A DNA stretch of 63,913 nucleotides, counting the filler, from Octopus bimaculoides (taxonomy: Eukaryota), in NCBI RefSeq assembly GCF_001194135.2. It is 4 parts of 4 records of this genome, joined end to end, with 100 filler letters (N's around TTAATTAATTAA, not from the genome) between each part and the next. Parts side by side here need not be neighbours in the genome. Positions count along the whole stretch, not along the records: positions 37,052 to 49,758 come from NC_068990.1; 3 more parts are not named here. One strand, written 5' to 3'. Made by a program: the position numbers and the translations under genes. Position 1 is the stretch's first letter, and every line of letters begins with the position of its first letter. This document shows, one piece after another, positions 36,918-51,404 of the stretch. The notes under the pieces are model-generated. The model saw only the letters and a program-made list of their open reading frames with translations. It searched no databases and was not told where the DNA came from.

Positions 36918-39893
36918 TACATGCACACACACACACATATACACACACATGNNNNNNNNNNNNNNNNNNNNNNNNNNNNNNNNNNNNNNNNNNNNTTAAT
37001 TAATTAANNNNNNNNNNNNNNNNNNNNNNNNNNNNNNNNNNNNNNNNNNNNAGGGGAGGGGAGGAGGTGGAAGAGGGAAGGAGGTGGAAGAGGGGAGGAG
37101 GAGGTGGAAGAGGGGAGGAGGAGGAGGAGGAGGAGGTAGTGATCGTGTTGGAGATGGCAGTGATGATGCTACTAGTGGTGATGCTGGTGGTGATGGTGAT
37201 GATAATACTGATAACACTAATCAATTAACCCTCTCCCCTTAAATTGAAGGACATGATTATTATTTTGATGAAGCATAAAATGAAATTTATAAATTATAAA
37301 GAATGTCATGAAAAGAATCGGTGTTGTAACTTATTAGTTCATAGTTCTGTGGGGAGTTGTTAAATGATCAATTCGACCTTATGATTTGCTAGATCATGTA
37401 GTTGAGAACTAATTTTGCAGTTGAGTGCTTTTTTCGATTACGAACGCCGAGTATTCGAATGTCATCAGCCTAACTGTAAATGTATCTATCGGATTTGATA
37501 TCATAGATTCCTTTGTTTGTGTATTAACCAGGGGAGAAATGGTTGGAACAATATATCTGGTACTTAAAGATCCTCACAGACTAGTGAGGTCAATGCAGTT
37601 GCTATTTTCCGTATTTCAATGTCTGTAGTAGAAACGTGAGCAAGAAGAGACTCCTAGAAAAACATCCCCGTCGAAGAACAATTGGGTAAAGTATTTAGTT
37701 GACGATCTAGAGCAAAAGAAGAATACTCAGCACACTTACTAGGGTCCATTGGTGTGTCAATATCTGCCGATTAGTGAAATGTGTATTGACAGGGAGGTGA
37801 ACACTGCACCAATGTAGCACCTACTTTAGCTTTGTCGATGGTCAACAAGTGATCAAGCTTGTGACATATTCTAGCCGTGAAAAGATCAAAATATAGTCTT
37901 TGGGTACATACTTTGTGAAAATACAGTATCGGTAGTCACTGAGAAGACAGAGAGGCGGGGGGAATTCAATATGAAGGAAAATGATACGTTGTTTACGATT
38001 TTTCCATGATGTTTGGAATTGTGAGGATGCTATACTGACTGTTGACTGAGTGAGGGAGTTTGTCCTTCCTAGGAATGCAATGCACTCAGTGCTGGATTTA
38101 CCATTGTGCTTAGGTGTGCTTAAGCACAAGGTCCCATTAAGGGACTCCTCCTTCCTGCCCCCAAAATCTTTACGATGAATTTTTCAAATGTCAAATGAAA
38201 AACGTAGCTAGGAAGCCTGTCCTTACTAATTTATTTACTACTTTACTTTTCAAAACAAGAATAAAGAAAAAATAATGCCAAAAGAAAAAAAAAACCCAAA
38301 ACATATATCTCTGAAGCTGGTCATAAAATTCCCTAGGAAATTTCGTAGAAAGATGAAAGAAATAATACTGAGAAAAGGCAATGTCAGCAACAACAACAAA
38401 AATGACGCCGACAGCAGCAACGACAAATTTAAAAGAATACATACATATATACACATATGTATATATATATAGGCAAATAAAAACAAAATCAATGAAAGCC
38501 AAAAGGATGTACACAGTGAATGCGTTATGCTGACGTTCAGTTTAAGATGACAAACGGACACACACACAAACACTCCTACTTGGCGTTGGTATCAAAGTAC
38601 ACTGTTCACTGATCCCCAGAGAATAATTGAAGACCATATGCATGTGTGTATGTATGTACATGTGCATACGTTTATCTATTTGTCTGTCTGCCTAGTTATG
38701 TATGCGCACACACATACATATATATGTATATGTATACGTGTGGTTATATATATATATATATATATATATATNNNNNNNNNNNNNNNNNNNNNNNNNNNNN
38801 NNNNNNNNNNNNNNNNNNNNNNNNNNNNNNNNNNNNNNNNNNNNNNNNNNNNNNNNNNNNNNNNNNNNNNNNNNNNNNNNNNNNNNNNNNNNNNNNNNNN
38901 NNNNNNNNNNNNNNNNNNNNNNNNNNNNNNNNNNNNNNNNNNNNNNNNNNNNNNNNNNNNNNNNNNNNNNNNNNNNNNNNNNNNNNNNNNNNNNNNNNNN
39001 NNNNNNNNNNNNNNNNNNNNNNNNNNNNNNNNNNNNNNNNNNNNNNNNNNNNNNNNNNNNNNNNNNNNNNNNNNNNNNNNNNNNNNNNNNNNNNNNNNNN
39101 NNNNNNNNNNNNNNNNNNNNNNNNNNNNNNNNNNNNNNNNNNNNNNNNNNNNNNNNNNNNNNNNNNNNNNNNNNNNNNNNNNNNNNNNNNNNNNNNNNNN
39201 NNNNNNNNNNNNNNNNNNNNNNNNNNNNNNNNNNNNNNNNNNNNNNNNNNNNNNNNNNNNNNNNNNNNNNNNNNNNNNNNNNNNNNNNNNNNNNNNNNNN
39301 NNNNNNNNNNNNNNNNNNNNNNNNNNNNNNNNNNNNNNNTCAGAGTAGTACCAGGTCATTTTACTACTATCAAAATGTTGAGGAATTAAAACCCTAGGTA
39401 TATGGGTCAAATAGGTTTTTTTCTTTTAGTCTGAATAGAGTATCAGTATAGTTATACAGATAACAATATTAGTTTAACCAATATTTTCACAATAAGAGGT
39501 ATGTTAATAAAATAAATAAAAAGAGATGTAATTATTTTATACAAAAATCATGAAATAATGTCATTATTGAATTCAGGGGCTATAGATAGGGTGTAAAGTT
39601 TAAGGATATTAAGTGTACTGGGTTCATGAGAACTATTTTGAATTATCTTAAAAAAATTATAGCTGAAAATAAAATAATGATACTATTTAGGAGACACATA
39701 GGTAAGCTTTATTTTTATAATGTGAATAAAAATTATTATCGGATTTATATTAGTTCATAATAATGTGTTTACTAAGGTTTAAGGGACTGAAAAAAGAAAA
39801 GATGCTAGGAAATAACAAGGATATTCAATACAGGAACCTGATTATTGATTTAAGTAGATTAAATGTTAAGGTGAGAGATCAGGAATATATATT

Positions 39894-39927
<34 letters not shown>

Positions 39928-41136
39928 GTGTACATATATACATGCGTGTGTATGTATATATATAGTTATATTTTTATATATAACGTTGACCACTAACGTG
40001 GACATTCAATGTGCTAGAAATAGATCACATCTTGTGTCTACTAAGACTTAAATTGTTCTCAAAACGAAATTTAGCGGAATACCAAAGCGTAAGTGGGCAA
40101 GACATTTAAAATTACCGAAAAACATCATTATTAAACAGGGACCGGTTTCGAAATTAACAATCTTACCGACTGTCTGTTTCTCTTCAGCCTATTCGTAATG
40201 TAACCATAATCCTCAGAACCCAATACAAAATTGCCCACCGTCATAGGTGCACGTGTATGTGGTTCTGTTAATTACAGCGTAATGGTAAAATTCAAAGATC
40301 TTCGTTTTGGCGCGCTAATTCCAGGAATATGTCTGCAGAAAATATGTACTGCGTCGCATATATCCAGTTTGAGAACTTGGTTATGGTTAATACATTAACA
40401 TAGGGTAAAAATCATATATTAATTAATACCGATTAATTACCAGGAAGCTAGCACATTTAAAGAATCAAAGAGATTCAGAAACAATATCTGCAATTACCCT
40501 ATGTTAATATATATAGTTATATGCATCGATTCGTTTTTTACTCTTATTTCTAGCAATGCTGGTATTATTTTATACCCTGGTTTATTAATTTGCGTTTAGG
40601 TTTTAATTGCTAACGGGCCGNNNNNNNNNNNNNNNNNNNNNNNNNNNNNNNNNNNNNNNNNNNNNNNNNNNNNNNNNNNNNNNNNNNNNNNNNNNNNNNN
40701 NNNNNNNNNNNNNNNNNNNNNNNNNNNNNNNNNNNNNNNNNNNNNNNNNNNNNNNNNNNNNNNNNNNNNNNNNNNNNNNNNNNNNNNNNNNNNNNNNNNN
40801 NNNNNNNNNNNNNNNNNNNNNNNNNNNNNNNNNNNNNNNNNNNNNNNNNNNNNNNNNNNNNNNNNNNNNNNNNNNNNNNNNNNNNNNNNNNNNNNNNNNN
40901 NNNNNNNNNNNNNNNNNNNNNNNNNNNNNNNNNNNNNNNNNNNNNNNNNNNNNNNNNNNNNNNNNNNNNNNNNNNNNNNNNNNNNNNNNNNNNNNNNNNN
41001 NNNNNNNNNNNNNNNNNNNNNNNNNNNNNATATATATATATTAATAAATTATAGGGTAGCAAAAAAAATTTTAGAAATTTTATTTACCACCAGTGGTCCA
41101 GCGAGAGTAAAAAAAAACAGTCAATAGACTATGTAT

Positions 41137-41215
41137 TATTCATTTAAAATGCAGAGATGCCTATTTCTAGCGAGTAGATGTCCTATTATAGGCATCTCTG
41201 CATTTTAAATGAATA
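41137..41215. repeat. Perfect 28-bp inverted repeat with 23-nt loop
   Basis: TATTCATTTAAAATGCAGAGATGCCTAT / ATAGGCATCTCTGCATTTTAAATGAATA. Confidence 0.9.
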
Positions 41216-41579
41216 TATATGTGTGTGTGTGTGTGTGTTAAGAGGGGCTTTTTATTTAAACAGTTTACATGAAAATGTTCAAAATAGGTAGTAAAATAAA
41301 TTTATAATTATTTTAAGTTCATCAAGAATCATGGTTGTATAGAAGCATATATACAGGAGGAAATATATTTAAGTATTTATACAGAATTCTAGAGGAATGA
41401 CCAACCTTTCCATCCATCATCTCCTGTTTTGTAGTGTGTATATGAGAAATGCTTGCTATTTTTAGAAATGGTGTAGGAGGTTGATTCGTTGATGGTGGAG
41501 AGCATTGTGGAATCAAAAGGATTTTTTGTTTCTAGGTTAGTCTGTCATAGTTCAGTGGTTTGAGAGACTGAGAGTTCAA

Positions 41580-42776
41580 AATAGTGTGAGTCTGTGTGTT
41601 TCTGTGCACGTTTCTATGTGTGTGTGTACATATATGTGCTTGTATTTGTGTATGGGTTTTTTCATTGGTCTTAGAGTTCAAGACCATGAAAATGGGTATA
41701 AGACCCATGAAAATTCAAAGAGTTCCGTATGGGGTGTGTATGGGTTTGTGTATGTGTGTTTTATATTTAGCAGGATGGTGCGTGAATGTGTGCACTTTTG
41801 TGTGTGTGTATATGTGTGATTCGTATTTGTCAGGGGTGCTGTGTGAGTGCATGTGTGTGTGTGTGTTTGTTCGTGTGTGTGTATGTTTGTGTGTGTTGTG
41901 TTGGTGGGGAGGTTATATGCGTGTACGTGAGTATGTGTGTGTCTCTGAGTATGTTTGTGTTGTAATTGTCCGGGTGGTGTGGTGGAGAGGTAGTGCAACC
42001 GTATGTGTGTGTGTGTGTGAGGGTGCATATGTATGTGTGGGTGTGTATGTGTGTGTTGTATTTGTCAGGGGTTCGGTGTGTATCTATGTGTGTTACGTTT
42101 ATCCGGGTGGTGTGTACGTGTGTGCGTGTACGTACTGTGCATGTTTGTACTGAGTATGCGTTTATGTGGGTGTGGTTTATGTAGTTTTCGGGTGTGTATG
42201 CACATGTGTGTGTGCTATATTTGTTGTGGCGAAGTGTGTGTGTGTGTGTGTGTGTGTACGTGTGGGTGTATTTGTGTGAGTGTGTTGTCTATGTGTCTTG
42301 TATTTGTCAGGGTGGTGTGTGTTATTGTGTGTGTGTGTATGTTATTGTGTGTGTGTGTGCGTGCTTGTCTGTGTATATATGTGTGTATGTGCGTGTGTCT
42401 GTCAGTGTTTGTTGGGATTGTATTGCGTGTATATATGTGAGCGTGTGTGTGATTTTTTACTGTGGAACGGGCATATTGTGTTTGTGTACATATGTGTGTA
42501 TATATATGCGTGTGTGNNNNNNNNNNNNNNNNNNNNNNNNNNNNNNNNNNNNNNNNNNNNNNNNNNNNNNNNNNNNNNNNNNNNNNNNNNNNNNNNNNNN
42601 NNNNNNNNNNNNNNNNNNNNNNNNNNNNNNNNNNNNNNNNNNNNNNNNNNNNNNNNNNNNNNNNNNNNNNNNNNNNGGTATTTGCGTGTTTGTGTGTGTA
42701 TATGTGGGTATGTTTGTGTGAGTGTGTCTTGTATTGTCAGGGCGGTGTGTGTAGGTATGTGCCTGTGCATGTTTAC

Positions 42777-42826
<50 letters not shown>

Positions 42827-43050
42827 TGGTTGTGATTGCTAGAATCGTATTGCATGTGAATATATGCATGTGTTTTTTCTTGGAATGTATGTGAGTTTGT
42901 GCTCGAGCGTATGGATATTGTGTTTGTGCATGTGTGTGTGTTTGTGTGGGAGGTTTGCATTGTATTTGTGCGTGTGTTTGTACATCTGTGTGTGTTTCTG
43001 TGTGCATTTGTTGTGGATGTGTACCTGGGGGGGGATATTAGAGTATGTTG
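41580..43050. repeat. Degenerate (TG)n-rich low-complexity tract inside the hAT element
   Basis: Direct inspection; its ORFs are C/V/Y-rich artefacts. Confidence 0.9.
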
Positions 43051-43590
43051 AGTTGTGGCCTATATAGTTTCACTCGTGCGGTACCATATATATATATATA
43101 TTATATATATATATAGGAGAGATAGAAGGGGTGGAGAGAGAGATTTCACAAAAGAAATCATTCTGTTCCTTCCATATTTTCGCCAGACTGATCTCCAAGT
43201 TTGTCAGTTTTTTAGGATAACGGTAAGAAAATTTTCATATTTTCTGTAACTGGTAATTTCACAGTTTAGTATTGATCAAATAATTGCAATGTAAAAAAAA
43301 TCCTATAATGTGAGCATGCCTTAAGTTGGCTTTATGCAGTGAAGTATATGCTGTATGTTTGTTATATCGTATAACAGTGTTTGTGTGTGTCATTGTTATT
43401 CATTAAGTATTTTTGTTTAGTTCGATCTAGTTTGTTGCAAGTTTTTATCCAACTTTCTGTTTTAATTTTTGATATTATATTGTTAATTCTTTTGTTAATT
43501 TATTACATATTGATTTGAAATTTGTATTATTAGGTTCTTAGAATCGAACTCAACCAACTGATACTCTTCTCCAGCTCTTTAATCGTAACA

Positions 43591-46143
43591 ATGAGTAGAC
43601 GTTACGAAAGTAGTGCAAGTAAAAGAAAACGTCAAAAAGAACAAAAAGATATAATTAAACGTTTAAAGCCAATCACATCATTTGGCTTTGCACACTCGGA
43701 ACAAACGGGTTCAGCAGCAGATACAGAAGATTCAGATACATTACTTGGCACCCGGGAGCATTTGTCAGTAACATAACTCCAAGTACTGATTTCCTTGTCA
43801 AGATTGATGTAGGTTTATGGACCATATTGAACAATGAAAAAATTTCATTTCGGATTGAGAAAGTTTGTTTATTTCTCCTCATGTTGTACACGACTTGAAC
43901 AGAAAGTGGTCCCCTCTTCGAACCACTCTAGTGTCTCTAACATTACCCTGATGAGGAGGGACAAATCTCACTCGCACAAAGCCTAGTCCTACCGGGAGTA
44001 ACTTTTAAACAAACAAACACTGCTCCAGTAGTAACAGTCAATCTAATTGGGATGGACCTTTCACAACTTCGAAGCAAACCTACAAAAACCAAACTCGTTC
44101 ATGCTCAAGAAGTTTATTCTTCTCCACTAAAATAAATAGAGAAACCTACCCTTGGGAATGGCTAGTATATTACCCAACAAAAGGAAAAGTCTACTGTTTT
44201 GTGTGCAAACTTTTCTCAAAATTCTCTGAGAACGTTTCTTCAACTACAACTCTAGCTTCTTCAGGATTCGATAACTGGTCTCAATCTTAAATTATTAAGA
44301 CCCATGAAAATTCAAAAGATCACATGGCCTACTTAACAAGAAAACGTGGTCAGACGCTTACAACAAAGCTTGATGAGCAAATCAAAGCAGAACATGATTT
44401 CTGGAAGCGTGTACTTCAGCAGGTGATGACAGTGATTTACTTGTTGAGAGAACGTGGATTGGCTTTTAGAAATGATGAAACTTTCTGCTGCCCAAACAAC
44501 GGAAACTTTCTCGGTTTGCTGGAATTGATTGCCAAATTTGATCCCTTCTTACGTACCCACATAAATCAGTATGAAAATGAAGGCCATACATCATACCTAT
44601 CCAAAACCATATGTGAAGAAGTTATCCAGCTAATGGCTAAAATAGTTCTTGAAGAAATAGTGAAAGAAATCAAAGAAGCAGGTTATTTTAGTGTATCGGT
44701 CGATTCAACGCTTGATGTTTCCAATGTTGATCAACTCACTGTAATTGTTAGACATGTTTCTTCCCTTGATGGAATACCAGTTGAACGGTTTTTGACATTT
44801 ATTGAACTGAAGAATCACACAGGTGAAGAAATGGTTGAATTGATACCGAATTTCTTTGAAGAACTTGAAATTGATTTCAGAAACTGCAGGGGTCAATCAT
44901 ATAACAATGCAGCAAATATGGCTGGAAAGTATAATATAATGGCGTTCAGCAGAAAATTCTGGAAAAGAATAAGTTTGCAAAATTTATTCCCTGAGCTGAA
45001 CATTACCTAAATCTGGTTGGAGGAGCTGCAGTTGACTCTTACCTTGATGCAGTGAATTTCCTTGGCGTTGCCAATGAACTTTATTGCTTTTTCTCAGCAT
45101 CTACAAGACTGTGGGCAGTGCTGAAAAAACTTCTTTCCACCAGTGTCAAAAGCTCCGCAACAGTTATCTAACACAAGATAGGAAGCCCATGCCAAGAGCT
45201 ACGACAGCCATCAGTGCAAGTTACGCACACATTGTTGGAGCTCTCAGTCACGTCCATGATGATGACACTGAAATGGTTGACACTAGACGACAAGCTCAAA
45301 ATATTTTGCAGAAAAATGGAAGAATTTGAATTTGTGCTCATGCTTCATCTATGGACAGGTTGGCTTGAGTAGTTTCACTAAGTAATGCCTTTCAAAGTGC
45401 ACAGATTTCATTGACCAATACAGTTCATATCTGCAATTTGTTTCCAGCATATGGGAAAACTTTGATGAGATTGAGGAGCAAGCAAAAACTACTCTACCTG
45501 ATGTAGAGTACAGAAGCCTCCAAAGAAGGCGTAGAAAACGACAACACAGTGATGGCAGTGCAACTAAAGCTTTGGATGAAATTCTTCCAATGGATAATTT
45601 TAGGATATATTCATTTATTCCTATAACTGATACTCTTCACTCAAATTTAGACAGAAGAGCTATTGTGTATATGAATGAGTATTGCTGACAATTTCTCGTT
45701 TTTAATTGATCTGCAAGTGACGAGGGAGCAAATTTTCCATTGTGTCAAGAAACTAGAATAAGAATCCCCAAAGAATGTTGATCTGTCTTGTTGATGAACT
45801 CTTGACTTTCCACTTGTATGTCAAACAGGCTCATGCAGAAAAAGAAAGCTTCAGCCACCAAGACGTGTACAAAATAATAAAACAGGAGAAAATTCAGACA
45901 GTTTTCCCAAATGTGGAAACAATTTTTAGATTGTTCCTGTGTTTGATGGTCACTAACTGTTCTGGACAGAGATCATTTTCTAGACTGAAAAGGATCAAAA
46001 GTGACCTTCATTCAACAATCTCACAAGAGAGGCTGTCTGTCCTGAGTATTCTCTGTATAGAGAATGATAAACTGCGACCTATTGATTTTGATGAAATTGT
46101 TGATGAGTTTGCAGTCAGGAAATCTCGAAGGAAGATGTTCTGA
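43591..46143 (+). pseudogene. Disrupted hAT transposase (ZMYM1-like: TTF-type zinc finger, DUF4371, hATC dimerisation)
   Basis: EWLVYYPTKGKVYCFVCKLF; GLAFR...GNFLGLLELIAKFDP; YLSKTICEEVI; FSVSVDSTLDVSNVDQL; CRGQSYNNAANMAG; FPNV..RLFLCLMVTNCSGQRSFSRLKRIK....ISQERL. Multiple frameshifts and stops. Confidence 0.92.
43860..44048. repeat. 189-bp perfect inverted copy of 47052-47240
   Basis: Position x pairs with 91100-x; no mismatch found by eye over 189 bp; the match stops at 43859/47241 and 44049/47051. Confidence 0.92.
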
Positions 46144-46574
46144 CATTAAATAGCCTACTGTAAATGTATAATGACTGTCCTGTCTGTTCACTTTTTATCA
46201 AGTTTGACTACTTCATCATGTGGCCTGTGTAAGTTCAAAAATTTGACTGACTTGTTTTTAAAAAAATAATGATTAATCTGGTAACAGGTAATAGTTTAAC
46301 TACCCCTAAATTTCCTGAGCATCTCTTAAATCCAGCACCGAATGCACTGGTGTGTATTCCTGTAAATTGGAAAAGAAGCTTTTAGAAGAGATTGCGAGTA
46401 GAATTATCCGACTTAATAATCTGTGGAACTCATTTGAAATGTAACTGAATTTATCGACCAGAGTTTTGTTTTGTTTTTGTTTTTATTATCGGGGGTGGCG
46501 GGTTGGGTTTCTTTCTGATGGATAATGACAAATCATATTATGTTTCAGCTGGAGATTTTTAACCGATTTTCATT

Positions 46575-46765
46575 ATGGTCCGAAAAATTTGCGTACTAGG
46601 AGCTGGAATTATTGGTCTCTACTCGGCTGTACGAATTCTTGAAGACTTACAAAATGTTGATGTTACGATTATTGCTGAAAAATTTTCTCCGAACAACACA
46701 ACCGACGTGGCTGCTGGCTTCTGGAGACCCTATAAAATGGGCTCCACAAACGCGTTACTAATCAA
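46575..46765 (+). CDS. D-amino-acid oxidase / D-aspartate oxidase family (DAO/DDO), first coding exon
   Basis: [53 protein letters not shown]: GAG.IG FAD motif plus the family TTDVAAG.W.PY motif; donor AA|GTAAGT (phase 2); upstream acceptor tatgtttcag at 46548. DAO versus DDO cannot be resolved from one exon. Confidence 0.92.
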
Positions 46766-47217
46766 GTAAGTTGAAACGATTTCTCTATTTTTTCGTTTTG
46801 CCTGTGTAAATGTAATTCAGTTTAAAGGATGAATGCTGCATATTTGAAGAACATATTGCCGAGTTGAAAACCTAAAATAGCAGGTGACTGTGGGAAACTT
46901 CTGAGTCATTAGTTCATGACCTGTTATAGGCAGCTTCTTTATATTTTATCAAGACAATTAATACTACTAGCTTCTGATCGCCTCGCTAACTTGTAGTTGG
47001 CATTTCTATGTAAAAACTGGTACCATTCATTTAAATAAAAACAGAGAAATTAATTAGATTGACTGTTACTACTGGAGCAGTGTTTGTTTGTTTAAAAGTT
47101 ACTCCCGGTAGGACTAGGCTTTGTGCGAGTGAGATTTGTCCCTCCTCATCAGGGTAATGTTAGAGACACTAGAGTGGTTCGAAGAGGGGACCACTTTCTG
47201 TTCAAGTCGTGTACAAC

Positions 47218-47587
47218 ATGAGGAGAAATAAACAAACTTTATGTTAGTTCAAATATGTTTGTGACATATTTAAACTTCTAAAGGCAGTTCCACTACAGCT
47301 TAACATCCAGAAAATATTCTTGCATATGGTAAAAGATGTAAAAACGCCTTATCGGTTTATTTCTCATCATTGCTTGGCGCTGCTACTACAATATGAGGAA
47401 GGCTAAGGAGCCAGAAACATGTCTATCAGTCCGATAGAGTGTGACGTTGAACAGATAAGGTGTTTTTACACCTTTTACCATAGGTGATAATTTTCTTTCG
47501 CTCCACGATATCAGCAGAGAAATTACTTTAGAAGTTAAAATATGTCACATATTTGAACGAACAAAAAGTTTGTTTATTTCTCATCAT
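47218..47587. mobile_element. Foldback/MITE with ~62-bp TIRs and an inner 29-bp inverted pair
   Basis: 47218-47283 pairs with about 47526-47587; 47325-47353 pairs with 47454-47482 (27/29). Confidence 0.82.
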
Positions 47588-49039
47588 AGATATTTTAACT
47601 ATGAATTGCAATGCCTTATTTTATCTACTTAATTACTAAGAATGCCAATCGGAAGGATTCTTGGATTATTCAGATCAAGCGAAGAAGAAGCCCTACTGTT
47701 TCTGTACATAACGTTTGTTCTCGTCTGTCTGAATATTTACTCTCAGTTATGGTCGCCATATTAAATTAATGGAAGAATAGAGACAATACAACGGCTTCAA
47801 TGAAACAGCTGCGCTACTGAGAGAGAAATAGACGGAGCTAAGATTCTACTGCTCGGAGCAAAAAAAATCGATTAAAATAAATATGATTCTTAGTTGATTT
47901 CAAATCAGGTGAAAAGAAAAATAATTTTAAATTGGTATACAGATTAATGGATTTGCAAATGACTATATATGTTTGTATGTTACTATATATATAAGAGTGT
48001 ATACATATATTTACATATGTGTGTTGGGGTGTGTGTGAAATATAAATATATATATATATTTATATTTCACACACACCGCAACATATATATATGTGTGTGT
48101 GTGTGCGTGTGTGNNNNNNNNNNNNNNNNNNNNNNNNNNNNNNNNNNNNNNNNNNNNNNNNNNNNNNNNNNNNNNNNNNNNNNNNNNNNNNNNNNNNNNN
48201 NNNNNNNNNNNNNNNNNNNNNNNNNNNNNNNNNNNNNNNNNNNNNNNNNNNNNNNNNNNNNNNNNNNNNNNNNNNNNNNNNNNNNNNNNNNNNNNNNNNN
48301 NNNNNNNNNNNNNNNNNNNNNNNNNNNNNNNNNNNNNNNNNNNNNNNNNNNNNNNNNNNNNNNNNNNNNNNNNNNNNNNNNNNNNNNNNNNNNNNNNNNN
48401 NNNNNNNNNNNNNNNNNNNNNNNNNNNNNNNNNNNNNNNNNNNNNNNNNNNNNNNNNNNNNNNNNNNNNNNNNNNNNNNNNNNNNNNNNNNNNNNNNNNN
48501 NNNNNNNNNNNNNNNNNNNNNNNNNNNNNNNNNNNNNNNNNNNNNNNNNNNNNNNNNNNNNNNNNNNNNNNNNNNNNNNNNNNNNNNNNNNNNNNNNNNN
48601 NNNNNNNNNNNNNNNNNNNNNNNNNNNNNNNNNNNNNNNNNNNNNNNNNNNNNNNNNNNNNNNNNNNNNNNNNNNNNNNNNNNNNNNNNNNNNNNNNNNN
48701 NNNNNNNNNNNNNNNNNNNNNNNNNNNNNNNNNNNNNNNNNNNNNNNNNNNNNNNNNNNNNNNNNNNNNNNNNNNNNNNNNNNNNNNNNNNNNNNNNNNN
48801 NNNNNNNNNNNNNNNNNNNNNNNNNNNNNNNNNNNNNNNNNNNNNNNNNNNNNNNNNNNNNNNNNNNNNNNNNNNNNNNNNNNNNNNNNNNNNNNNNNNN
48901 NNNNNNNNNNNNNNNNNNNNNNNNNNNNNNNNNNNNNNNNNNNNNNNNNNNNNNNNNNNNNNNNNNNNNNNNNNNNNNNNNNNNNNNNNNNNNNNNNNNN
49001 NNNNNNNNNNNNNNNNNNNNNNNNNNNNNNNNNNNNNNN

Positions 49040-49242
49040 ATAAATGAGTATATGCATATATACGTACAGGTATGTGCATACCTACGTCTACCTGTATATA
49101 TAGGTGCATATCTGGGTACAGAACATTGCAAACAAAACGTAGACAAAAAAAATAACAACCAGAGTACAGAAAACACACAGGCCACATAGAGAACATTTTC
49201 CTTCATCAGCTACCCCCATTCTGACACAGGCGTTTCGAAGAG

Positions 49243-49243
<1 letters not shown>
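49040..49243 (-). repeat. Dispersed repeat with CTTCGAAAC...CTGATGAAGG (copies also at about 51908-52115 - and 60148-60360 +)
   Basis: Shared body CTCTATGTGGC.TGTGTGTTTTCTGTACTC...GTACCCAGATATGCA...TACTCATTTA; possibly Penelope-related. Confidence 0.7.
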
Positions 49244-49273
<30 letters not shown>

Positions 49274-51404
49274 ATATCTATAATATCTAATATTGATATC
49301 TAATATCTAATATTGATATCTATAAATTTCCCATACTTAGTATATGTATAACAATACTGATGCTTTATTCAGACTAAAGAAAAAGCCCTGTTGACCTAAA
49401 TGCTTAAAGTTTTAATTCCCCAACATTATGATAGCAGTAAAAAACCTAACTTAAAATAGTGTTGCCACTCTGACCAGAGAAACCTTTATAACTATATCCA
49501 TGTATAATGCTTACAACTTTCCTTTCCTTAGAAGGGATTGCCCTTTATACTATAACCACTAGATAAGAGACAATAAAATCAGAGACAGTTAGAATTCTAC
49601 CTAAAACTAATTACTAGTCTGCTAGCCTTGGCTATGTCAAGATGGATTTTTATGTATTCTTCTTCCCACTTGGATTTTGAATGTTGCCACAATTATAATA
49701 TGTCTATTCTACTGTAATTTTTCTACATTTTTGTGCAGCTGAAGATTGTTCTACATATNNNNNNNNNNNNNNNNNNNNNNNNNNNNNNNNNNNNNNNNNN
49801 NNTTAATTAATTAANNNNNNNNNNNNNNNNNNNNNNNNNNNNNNNNNNNNNNNNNNNNCAAAATTATTACCTGAAGATGATGAGAGGAACAGATCGGCAG
49901 AATCGGTAACGCACAGGTGAAAATATCTTGTGGCATTTCGTCTCGAATAGTTATACATTCTTAGTTCAAATCCCGCTGAAGTCATCTATGCTGCTCGTCT
50001 TTCCGAGAGCTGAGTCGCTAAAACACAGACCAATAAAATATTGATTTCAAATTTTGGCACAAGGCCAGCAATTTCGGGGTGGGGTGGTGTGAGTCGGTTA
50101 CATCGAACCTCCTCCCCCAGTACACAACTGGCACTTATTTTATCGACCCCCGAAAGGATGAAAGACAAAGTCGACTTCGGCGGAATTTTAACACAAAACG
50201 TAAAGACGGACGAAATGCCACTTAGTATTTTGTCCGGCATGCTAAAAAAAGCAAAATGTTTAGTAGCATTTCGTCCGTCTTTTACGTTCTAAATTCAAAT
50301 TCCGCCAAAGTTGATTTTGCATTTCATTCTTTTGGGGTCGATCAAATATTGGTATCTATCCAATCGAATGCTTGCTGCGCATGCCTGAGCTTGTGTCTTT
50401 GTTAGAAAACATAAATAAAAGACAACAACTGAAGAAGATGCATAGCCCAGAGGTTCGGATGTTACACTCACGATCGTAAGGGCGTGGTTTCAGATCCTCG
50501 GACCACGGGCTGCGTTGAGATGTTTGAGCAAAATATTTCATTTCTCGTCGCTCCAGTCCACTGCAAACGGACTGGAGGAACTACTGATTCTGCTCACGCT
50601 ATGCAAAGCGGATAACCGGTCCTATTGTAACCTTGAACTCAAGCCAGGACTTGCATTTTAACACAGACTGAGGTAGTTTAGTTTTATTTTATTTTATCTT
50701 CTCAGGCGCAGGAGTGGCTGTGTGGTAAGTAGCTTGCTTACGAACCACATGATTCTAGGTTCAGTCCCACTGCGTGGCATCTTGGGCAAGTGTCTTCTAC
50801 TATAGCCTCGGGTCAACCAAAGCCTTGTGAGTGGATTTGGTAGACGGAAACTGAAAGAAGCCTGTCGTATATATGTATATGTATATATATATGTGTGTGT
50901 TTGTGTGTCTGTGTTTGCCCCCCACCCCACCCCCACCGACATCGCTTGACAACCGATGCTGGTGTTTTTACGTCCCCGTAACTTAGTGGCACGGCAAAAG
51001 ACACCGATAGAATAAGTAGTAGGTTCACAAAGAATAAGTCCTGGGGTCGATTTGCTCGACTAAAGGTGGTGCTCCAGCATGGCCACAGTCAAATGACTGA
51101 AACAAGTAAAAGAGTAAAAGAGTAAATAAACAAAATGAATGTTAATGCCAGTGATATTTTCGTATAGGTCTGCTGTTACATATTTCACGGCATGCTATAA
51201 CATTGCTCGTTATAGAAGTTAAGTACCCCGTGCTATGAAAGATGGATCGTACCTCTTGTAGTTTGTTATTAACAGCGAAACTAAAACAAAACAATCAAAC
51301 AATCGCCTCAAAGAACAACGGAATAATAAGTAAATTATTATATATATATATATAAATTTGTTTTTTGTCAAAACTCACGGGATGGCGGAAAGGTTATAAC
51401 TATA

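Follow-up and report, generated by a model that had tools for sequence, protein, structure and literature searches.

A perfect inverted copy of neighboring intron DNA within a decayed hAT transposase gene of Octopus bimaculoides, probably a microhomology-mediated repair scar

In Octopus bimaculoides, about 18 nt of a hAT transposase gene have been replaced by an inverted copy of 181-182 nt of a nearby intron, joined to the hAT sequence through the short overlaps AAAG and ATT/AATT. This replacement probably records a microhomology-mediated templated inverted insertion, produced by the repair of a break or of a replication fork within a hAT that was already dead. As such, it is a known kind of repair scar, a single neutral one located in non-coding DNA, and it leaves the general picture unchanged. 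The window, that is, the whole stretch of DNA analyzed, is 63,913 nt long, and the locus lies in a 12.7-kb piece of it that contains the following features.

43591-46143, + strand: decayed hAT transposase gene, ZMYM1-like/Buster-type (Pfam, homologues, frameshift-aware alignment, tblastn)
43860-44048, no strand assigned: inserted inverted copy, an exact match to the donor and absent in the related hAT L004
46575-46765, + strand: first coding exon of a DAO-family gene (Pfam DAO), lying between the two arms, with its end placed by the GTAAGT at 46766
47052-47240, no strand assigned: donor (template), continuous with its flanks and located within the first intron of the DAO-family gene
47218-47587, no strand assigned: MITE-like inverted-repeat element of 370 nt, with 41-nt terminal arms of 93% complementarity

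The inverted copy and its donor

An earlier note on this DNA had described 43860-44048 as the exact reverse complement of 47052-47240, and this was confirmed by repeat search and string comparison, which found all 189 positions identical (100%). The two arms are separated by a spacer of 3003 nt, and direct string comparison showed that the ends of the match are exact, the next base outside being mismatched on both sides. A perfect inverted match of 189 nt within 12.7 kb cannot have arisen by chance, and self-BLAST of the whole piece returned only one further non-trivial match that involves this region, which pairs the 23 nt at the edge of the 370-nt element with the other arm of that element.

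The same analysis upheld the proposal that the donor consists of intron DNA plus part of an inverted-repeat arm, as it is made of 166 nt of intron followed by 23 nt from the start of the left arm in the 370-nt element. The intron belongs to a D-amino-acid/D-aspartate oxidase-like gene of the DAO family, whose called start at position 12252 of L001, the assembly record of this locus, corresponds to 46575 in the window, and whose first exon has a 94% identical counterpart in another octopus species (L002). The donor also occurs at the orthologous site in L002, with 80.8% identity over 167 nt and 26 mismatches, and because of this presence the intron copy is ancestral and thus the donor. The opposite direction of copying, from the hAT into the intron, was ruled out by the synteny with L002, to which positions 46322-48025 are collinear.

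The 370-nt element that supplied the last 23 nt is likewise found at the orthologous L002 site and is therefore old. As single-stranded DNA it folds into a hairpin of -84.4 kcal/mol (z -11.4), and its flanks (...GTACAAC and AGATATT...) contain no visible TSD.

One explanation for two copies of the same 189 bp is that they belong to a dispersed repeat family, such as a SINE or a MITE fragment, inserted independently at both sites. The sequence adjoins an inverted-repeat element and contains a motif, GGTTCGAA, that is reminiscent of a tRNA B box. However, the inserted copy matches L002 as poorly as the donor does, so that the sequence is 100% identical locally and only 81% identical to its orthologue; furthermore, it runs from unique intron DNA into 23 nt of another element, and it lacks a TSD. 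ARAGORN found no tRNA-like gene in the 189 bp, and Rfam gave no match above threshold. Weak negatives like these two were also obtained with the longest reading frame of the sequence, which shares words with no protein among 5.8 billion, and with a 23-mer that O. bimaculoides and L002 have in common, which had 0 matches in metagenome contigs. Independent insertion of a dispersed repeat is thus extremely improbable.

Replacement of 18 nt in the hAT gene

The recipient was identified as a hAT transposase gene by two Pfam matches, PF14291 (DUF4371, 2.2e-17) and PF05699 (hAT C-terminal dimerization, 6e-8), and by 351 homologues in the protein collection, many of which are named ZMYM1-like. Its remaining ORF is collinear with that of full-length relatives. 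Besides the insert, the gene carries eight frameshifts and six in-frame stops, 14 disabling lesions in total, as counted by frameshift-aware alignment to the proteins P0017, P0063, and P0005.

What the insert replaced can be read from a related hAT of another genome (L004), which aligns to the window with 79.7% identity up to 43863 and with 73.6% identity from 44046 on, with 18 nt of its own between the two blocks. L004 reads ...ATTGAGAAAG-GTCCTTCGGAAATTCAAC-ATTGGGATGG..., whereas the window reads ...ATTGAGAAAG-[182 nt]-ATTGGGATGG... The loss thus amounts to 18 nt, or six codons (GTCCTTCGGAAATTCAAC in the nearest DNA relative), replaced by 182 nt, with the ancestral sequence of this hAT copy deduced from relatives that are only 74-80% identical to it. 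The motif K-G-(P/S)-x-x-C-Q-(N/H) is found at this site in every one of the 53 protein relatives that extend across it. The earlier note had anticipated that other hAT copies would lack the 189 bp and carry a short stretch in its place, as L004 indeed does. The parts of the insert that matter for the joins are listed below.

43864-44045: part of the insert foreign to the hAT, 182 nt long (181 nt should the A at 44045 belong to the hAT)
43860-43863, + strand: left overlap AAAG, a Lys codon and the first base of a Gly codon, common to hAT and donor
44045-44048, + strand: right overlap AATT, of which ATT is native to the hAT and the first A is uncertain

In the window, the left junction joins GGATTGAG to AAAGTTTG, and the right junction joins AATCTAATT to GGGATGG. 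At the left one, both DNA relatives (L004 and L005) read GAG/GAA AAA GGT, which makes AAAG native to the hAT in both, and the corresponding K-G is conserved among the protein relatives. At the right one, L004 and L005 read CAT TGG GAT and thus share ATT and not the first A, while the residue at this point is either His (CAT) or Asn (AAY) in the relatives, several of which carry N. Overlaps of 4 nt had been claimed for both joins; AAAG stands, and on the right only ATT (3 nt) is certain, since the relatives read CATTGG. If two joins were made at random, overlaps of at least 4 nt at one and at least 3 nt at the other would have a probability of about 1e-3. The flanks GGATTGAG and GGGATGGA are native hAT sequences that lie 18 nt apart in L004, and not a duplication. 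A more extended homeology at the right junction, between the end of the insert (SNSQSNW) and GPSNCQHW in P0004, was considered and rejected because the Q alone is conserved across the 53 relatives, and a gap is needed to align it.

The orientation of the transposase is unchanged across the insert (...ISFRIEK before it and NWDGPF... after it), with a frame shift from 0 to 2. An inversion with duplicated breakpoints, of the staggered-break type, is rejected on this ground and on that of the collinearity of 46322-48025 with L002, so that the exclusion of an inversion already drawn from the transposase orientation is borne out.

The same observations bear on whether a short-read assembler, or a gap closer, placed an inverted copy inside the hAT by mistake. 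The build is a short-read one and highly fragmented (713,915 contigs), there are four N gaps in the 12.7-kb piece, and the sole other available copy of the locus, in GCA_001194135.2 (L001), comes from the same assembly; the junctions are accordingly confirmed at the assembly level in this one assembly, which is identical to the window base for base. However, both arms and all four junctions lie within a single N-free stretch (42677-48113), and the insert swaps exactly 18 nt between microhomologies that are native to the hAT, after which the hAT resumes in register, a repair signature that mis-joined contigs would not be expected to leave. In addition, a path swap at an inverted repeat would have inverted the 3-kb interior, whereas collinearity is preserved both in the hAT and in the synteny with L002. 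No Logan contig is recorded with any of the ORFs that cross the junctions (72, 50, and 49 aa) or with the exon-1 ORF of O. bimaculoides; a k-mer assembler would break contigs at the repeat anyway. Taken together, an assembly artifact is distinctly improbable.

The event is recent because none of the 189 positions differs between the arms, which sets the pairwise divergence below 1.6% (95% bound), although this identity may be slightly inflated, as short-read assemblers may collapse near-identical arms, and gene conversion between the arms could have maintained it. The bound corresponds to less than 11.5% of the distance between O. bimaculoides and L002; an insert as old as the split of these two would be expected to show 26 differences, against the 0 seen. 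The insertion is thus young, and the hAT was a pseudogene by then. The earlier description of the insert as a recent, inverted, templated filler that arrived after the hAT had reached this locus is supported by the comparison with L004 and by the ancestral state of the intron donor.

A proposed repair route

The insert has no TSD around it and no inverted-repeat ends, as seen by direct reading, and it therefore lacks the hallmarks of transposition. The geometry favored here, inferred from the arrangement of the copies, is a fold-back of the resected right-hand 3' tail onto its own strand. In this scheme, a double-strand break would have occurred within the lost 18 nt, and its right-hand end would have been resected by more than 3.2 kb. 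The minus-strand 3' tail, ...CCCAAT(T)-3', would then fold back, so that its self-complementary AATT pairs with its own strand at 47052-47055, and extension by about 185 nt would proceed to 47240, stopping 23 nt into the base of the stable 370-nt hairpin element. The new 3' end, ...AAACTTT-3', would be unwound and annealed to the left-hand ...GAGAAAG-3', and the join would be completed by end joining. Alternatively, the same geometry may be reached during replication by a switch and return, in which the nascent leading strand moves to the lagging-strand template and then back. The two routes cannot be told apart from sequence alone, and neither needs a transposase.

When the strand polarity of the fold-back is followed through, every base of the observed sequence is recovered: the AATT at 47052-47055 is a palindrome with which the minus-strand 3' end ...CCCAATT can pair, and extension from this end regenerates 47056-47240. 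The orientation of the copy, its cis donor 3.0 kb to the right, and the complementarity of the primer all fit such a fold-back, which is compatibility and not proof. The copied tract terminates inside a hairpin of -84 kcal/mol, which hints that synthesis was halted at the hairpin-forming element. What counts against the fold-back is its range, as a 3-kb loop primed by 3-4 nt is far longer than those of experimental fold-back events.

A different possibility is that a free piece of intron-derived DNA or cDNA, about 185 nt long and arising either as a by-product of repair or by reverse transcription of pre-mRNA, was captured and ligated into the break by end joining, with no primed copying. The donor is in an intron of a + strand gene and would be present in pre-mRNA if the gene is expressed, and distant templated insertions at breaks are known. 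However, the donor is in cis, 3 kb away, and the orientation and overlaps fit a fold-back exactly, so that direct copying is the simpler account; moreover, neither a poly(A) tract nor anything else points to an RNA intermediate. Fragment capture is for these reasons highly improbable.

The earlier note had also implied a link with the gap repair of Ac/Ds elements. According to this view, the hAT was excised from one chromatid, the gap was filled by sister-templated SDSA from both ends, and at the meeting point of the two syntheses the polymerase switched to nearby DNA and left filler, giving an abortive repair of the Ac-to-Ds kind. The insert does lie inside a hAT, with microhomology at both joins, and filler DNA is a recognized feature of Ds-type hAT derivatives (PMC3260210); like these derivatives, the octopus element has foreign filler at an internal deletion junction.

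The comparison ends there, and the implied link turned out to be unsupported. The octopus hAT is long dead, and with its 14 lesions it cannot supply transposase. No convincing pair of TIRs with an 8-bp TSD was found in 42700-43600 and 46140-46345, where a search with thresholds of at least 7/12 for the TIR and at least 7/8 for the TSD gave three poor candidates, although decay could hide the ends, and L004 has no clear hAT termini either. Likewise, among the best 120 of the 351 protein matches, the only O. bimaculoides proteins more than 70% identical to the hAT are models of the same locus, the next-best matches being 57-70% identical and from other sources; no close intact paralogue or active source of transposase is evident among these 120 matches, although unannotated copies may exist. 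Finally, abortive gap repair as a rule removes large internal segments, whereas only 18 nt were lost here, and nothing in the sequence requires an excision. Any break or stalled fork would suffice, and the event need not be linked to hAT excision, so that abortive gap repair is quite unlikely.

Known systems and wider meaning

Microhomology-mediated templated insertion, the reading preferred here, has its closest counterparts in fold-back repair and SD-MMEJ. At yeast double-strand breaks, fold-back templated inverted insertions range from 2 to about 150 bp, with 0-5 nt of microhomology at the capture end, and most events are 5-34 bp long with loops of tens of nucleotides (PMC11724301). In Drosophila, snap-back SD-MMEJ is described in two reports (PMC2943611, PMC5728401). 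Like these events, the octopus insert is an inverted copy of nearby cis DNA at a break, with a small deletion of the target, an unchanged donor, and short microhomology at both the priming site and the capture end. Unlike them, it copies about 182 nt from 3.0 kb away, with a loop of about 3 kb, and, unlike the events of reporter assays, it took place in the germline of a wild animal, in whose genome it is either fixed or segregating.

Similarities exist also with replicative template switching, both of the four-point type and of the FoSTeS/MMBIR type, in which a segment is replaced by a nearby reverse complement, giving a perfect inverted repeat, with microhomology at two switch points. However, the four-point switch-and-return model was used to explain events of short range, with long-range ones explicitly left aside (PMC5453318), MMBIR events are usually larger than the octopus one and often multi-step, and the octopus sequence gives no sign that would favor replication over break repair.

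The locus is a clean natural record of repair, as the donor and its orthologue, the two junctions, and the 18 nt that were lost can all be read. It suggests that, in an animal germline, templated inverted insertions may draw on a template some 3 kb distant and copy about 180 nt of it, which exceeds typical reporter-assay events by one to two orders of magnitude. Such insertions also create perfect inverted repeats around neighboring exons, and the 189-bp inverted repeat found here brackets a 3-kb segment in which the DAO-family gene has its 5' flank and first coding exon.

It is very unlikely that this inverted repeat is more than a scar, either as a 189-bp dsRNA stem in a read-through transcript or as a substrate for flip-flop inversion. 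If it were, a transcript reading through from the hAT to the oxidase gene would form the dsRNA stem and might be a substrate for RNAi or for ADAR editing, a system that is very active in octopus; alternatively, the arms would allow the promoter to be flipped together with exon 1, so that an on/off allele would be polymorphic. A more practical observation concerns annotation, where caution is advised as the hAT-derived gene model at this locus rests on a pseudogene.

The inverted repeat, its recipient and its donor

A repeat search of the piece at 37052-49758 identified 43860-44048 and 47052-47240 as exact reverse complements of each other (189 nt, 100% identity, spacing 3003 nt), and direct sequence comparison set the length of the match at exactly 189 nt, with the first flanking base mismatching at either end. 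Both bear out the inverted identity claimed in the earlier note. The two arms lie within a single N-free stretch (42677-48113), and self-BLAST of the piece gave only two further non-trivial matches: 23 nt shared by the copy's end and the opposite arm of an inverted-repeat element close by, and an unrelated 21-nt direct repeat. The "inverted repeats" I1-I5 of the repeat search were discounted as merely N runs paired with one another. The same locus in GCA_001194135.2 (L001) is base-for-base identical to the window, N runs included, and is therefore no independent check.

Genes and lesions at the two arms:
43591-46143, + strand: hAT transposase gene (DUF4371, 2.2e-17; hAT C-terminal dimerisation domain, 6e-8)
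About 43747, 44930, 45124, 45197, 45312, 45385, 45680 and 45786, + strand: frameshifts in the hAT gene, from frameshift-aware alignment
44288, 44992, 45179, 45370, 45379 and 45759, + strand: in-frame stops in the hAT gene, from the same alignment
46575-46765, + strand: DAO-family oxidase gene, first coding exon, downstream of the hAT

The recipient has 351 homologues, many of which carry the name "zinc finger MYM-type protein 1-like", and its reading is 100% identical to the predicted Octopus bimaculoides protein LOC106875504 (P0001), which maps to chromosome record CM046610.1 of GCA_001194135.2. With eight frameshifts and six in-frame stops besides the insert, in alignment to full-length relatives, the gene is a pseudogene. 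LOC106875504 (281 aa; UniProt variant P0002), at 44324-45688, is a spliced model placed over the decayed hAT that skips the frameshifted parts, and that it yields a functional protein is very unlikely.

The donor is located about 290 nt into the first intron of the DAO-family gene, upstream of whose start codon the hAT lies, and, as had been proposed, it consists of host intron plus the first 23 nt of the adjoining element. The orthologous region was found in L002 (1973 bp), a contig of another octopus species that comes from a sequencing run and was reached via the 94% identical exon-1 peptide P0121; it aligns collinearly to window 46322-48025, with 79-83% identity. The donor stretch occupies the same intron place there (80.8% over 167 nt, 26 mismatches) and is followed by the inverted-repeat element, so the copy in the intron is the ancestral one and runs on unbroken into its surroundings. 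The hAT copy matches L002 as poorly as the donor does and matches the local donor perfectly; copying at this locus ran from the intron into the hAT.

Further differences from L002 were noted. An 11-bp stretch, AGAAATTAATT (about 47045-47057), is present in O. bimaculoides and missing from the orthologous sequence; it falls exactly on the donor's left boundary (47052) and contains the AATT priming site, a coincidence with a roughly 1-in-5 chance, given that the alignment has an indel about every 74 bp. The homology has an abrupt start at window 46322, some 180 nt past the transposase stop codon, and L002:1-141, where the contig ends, matches nothing in the 21-kb locus, so that species may lack the hAT, or a block larger than it, at this site. 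The 370-nt element (47218-47587) is orthologous to about 1100-1560 of L002, with about 113 extra nt in the centre and a degraded left arm there, and is therefore old; no target-site duplication of it is visible in either species, and what the earlier note called a MITE is a putative one.

The insertion site in related hAT copies

A related hAT alignable at the DNA level was found on L004, a 130-kb contig from another genome, reached via the 70% identical relative P0019. Window 43805-43863 aligns with L004 3581-3639 (79.7% identity) and window 44046-46093 with L004 3658-5744 (73.6%). The junction reads AAATTTCATTCTGGATTGAGAAAG | GTCCTTCGGAAATTCAAC | ATTGGGATGGACCTTT in L004 and AAATTTCATTTCGGATTGAGAAAG | 182 nt | ATTGGGATGGACCTTT in the window. 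Where the window has 182 nt, L004 has 18 nt, the six codons G-P-S-E-I-Q; the 189 bp are therefore not part of the hAT family. This is the outcome forecast for a check set in the earlier note, a related hAT with roughly 5-6 codons in place of the 189 bp, and it supports that note's main claim, that neighbouring intron DNA recently served as template for a filler insertion in inverted form. A second DNA relative, L005 (carrying P0004), reads GAA AAA GGT ... CAA CAT TGG GAT at the same site, and W-x-x-K-G-(P/S)-x-x-C-Q-(N/H) occurs in 53/53 protein relatives covering it. The L004 hAT is divided among four consecutive ORFs, so this copy is decaying too, and LINE-like endonuclease and reverse-transcriptase genes lie on its flanks (L004 1-1405, 3063-5800 and 8045-8741 for the hAT and its flanks together).

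Given these DNA relatives and the K-G conservation in the protein relatives, the left overlap AAAG (Lys plus the first Gly base) is native to the hAT. Of the right overlap, ATT is hAT-native; the remaining base, A in the window, is C in both DNA relatives, though Asn occurs at this position in several relatives. Here 3 nt are thus certain and 4 nt possible. Two 4-nt overlaps had been claimed, of which AAAG stands and AATT only in part, as ATT with a possible first A. Two random joins would show overlaps this long (4 nt or more and 3 nt or more) with a probability of about 1e-3. Overall, 17-18 nt were lost and 181-182 nt gained, and the reading therefore moves from frame 0 to frame 2.

Inversion was rejected, since the hAT orientation is unchanged across the insert and there is collinearity with L002 on the right, in agreement with the earlier reading of the transposase in one orientation on both sides. 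Transposon insertion was likewise rejected, as there is neither a target-site duplication nor termini of the insert's own; both flanks belong to the hAT itself and are separated by 18 nt in L004, and the fragment spans a junction between unique intron DNA and 23 nt from another element. The 189 bp are probably not a dispersed repeat. Weak negatives are that they contain no tRNA-like gene (ARAGORN) and no Rfam match above threshold, that their longest reading has no word-sharing protein among 5.8 billion, and that a 23-mer probe had no match in metagenome contigs.

An assembly artefact is very improbable. The assembly was built from short reads and is fragmented, and look-ups of the junction-spanning ORFs and the exon-1 ORF did not find them in other assemblies; however, what the insert displaced is precisely the sequence lying between two hAT-native microhomologies, beyond which the hAT is again in register, and a mis-resolved inverted repeat would flip the interior, which is not flipped.

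Proposed fold-back copying and the age of the insert

The insert has the anatomy of a microhomology-mediated templated insertion. On one simple path, a break inside the lost 18 nt would be followed by resection of the right-hand end past 47240, leaving the minus strand as a 3' tail ending in ...CCCAAT(T)-3'. This 3' end would fold back, pair with its own strand at the self-complementary AATT (47052-47055) and be extended through 47056-47240; after release, the new end ...AAACTTT-3' would anneal to the left-hand end's ...GAGAAAG-3'. Worked through strand polarity, this path yields the observed sequence exactly, and it would explain both the inverted orientation and a donor in cis on the right. 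The copied tract ends 23 nt within the element 47218-47587, for which fold prediction as single-stranded DNA gives a hairpin of -84.4 kcal/mol (z -11.4), and a stall at this hairpin is a plausible cause of the tract end.

At induced breaks in yeast, fold-back gives templated inverted insertions of 2 to about 150 bp; these require Pol delta, and NHEJ or alt-EJ captures them through 0-5 nt of microhomology (PMC11724301). The Drosophila counterpart is snap-back SD-MMEJ (PMC2943611, PMC5728401). The path proposed for the octopus insert shares this logic on a different scale, about 182 nt being copied over a 3-kb loop. Replicative switch-and-return (the four-point model, PMC5453318; FoSTeS/MMBIR) has the same geometry as fold-back and is inseparable from it by sequence. 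The locus is a fresh example of an already known type of repair scar, notable solely for its range and for the completeness with which the scar can be read.

The earlier note had also tied the event to hAT transposition, as excision-coupled gap repair. Filler DNA is genuine in Ds-type elements (PMC3260210), but this copy is long dead, no TIR/TSD pair was found for it or in L004, no close intact paralogue appeared among the 120 best of 351 hits in the protein collection, and the loss is limited to 18 nt. Nothing at the locus calls for such repair, which is thus a highly unlikely source of the insert, and this link is not sustained.

The two arms differ at 0/189 positions (95% upper bound 1.6%, or 11.5% of the O. 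bimaculoides-L002 distance, JC 0.138); were the insert as old as that split, 26 differences would be expected versus the 0 observed. The bound on its age would be about 4 My if L002's species belonged to the reference clade. Near-identical arms collapsed by a short-read assembler would look younger than their true age, and gene conversion between the arms would likewise give too young an apparent age. Even given both caveats, decay of the transposase gene predates the insert by far.

Other repeats of the piece

An exact 21-nt direct repeat, TAAGACCCATGAAAATTCAAA, occurs at 41699-41719 and 44296-44316; in blastn of the piece against itself the match has an E of 9.5e-5. The copy at 44296-44316 belongs to the hAT's own coding sequence (..K T H E N S K..), and the other, 2.6 kb upstream, lies in a TG-rich repetitive stretch beside the near-duplicate AAGACCATGAAAAT; the pair may represent a second, tiny templated patch, or chance. 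A long TG-rich minisatellite-like region (41570-43020), with repeated units containing TTGTCAGGG(T/C)GGTGTGTG (families D2, D5 and D10), is broken by an assembly gap at 42517-42676.

The AT/GT-rich palindrome at 48015-48090 (42-nt arms, 93% complementarity), which adjoins an assembly gap, has many sub-threshold miRNA-like Rfam matches (best 44.6 bits versus a gathering score of 80) and is almost certainly a low-complexity hairpin. Two inverted stretches of about 100 nt each, 39359-39462 and 49341-49442 (I9 and I23), are 79-86% complementary and 10 kb apart; both are probably old members of a dispersed repeat family. Finally, a perfect 22-nt inverted repeat with a 23-nt spacer (TTTAAAATGCAGAGATGCCTAT ... 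ATAGGCATCTCTGCATTTTAAA) was read directly from the sequence at 41143-41209.
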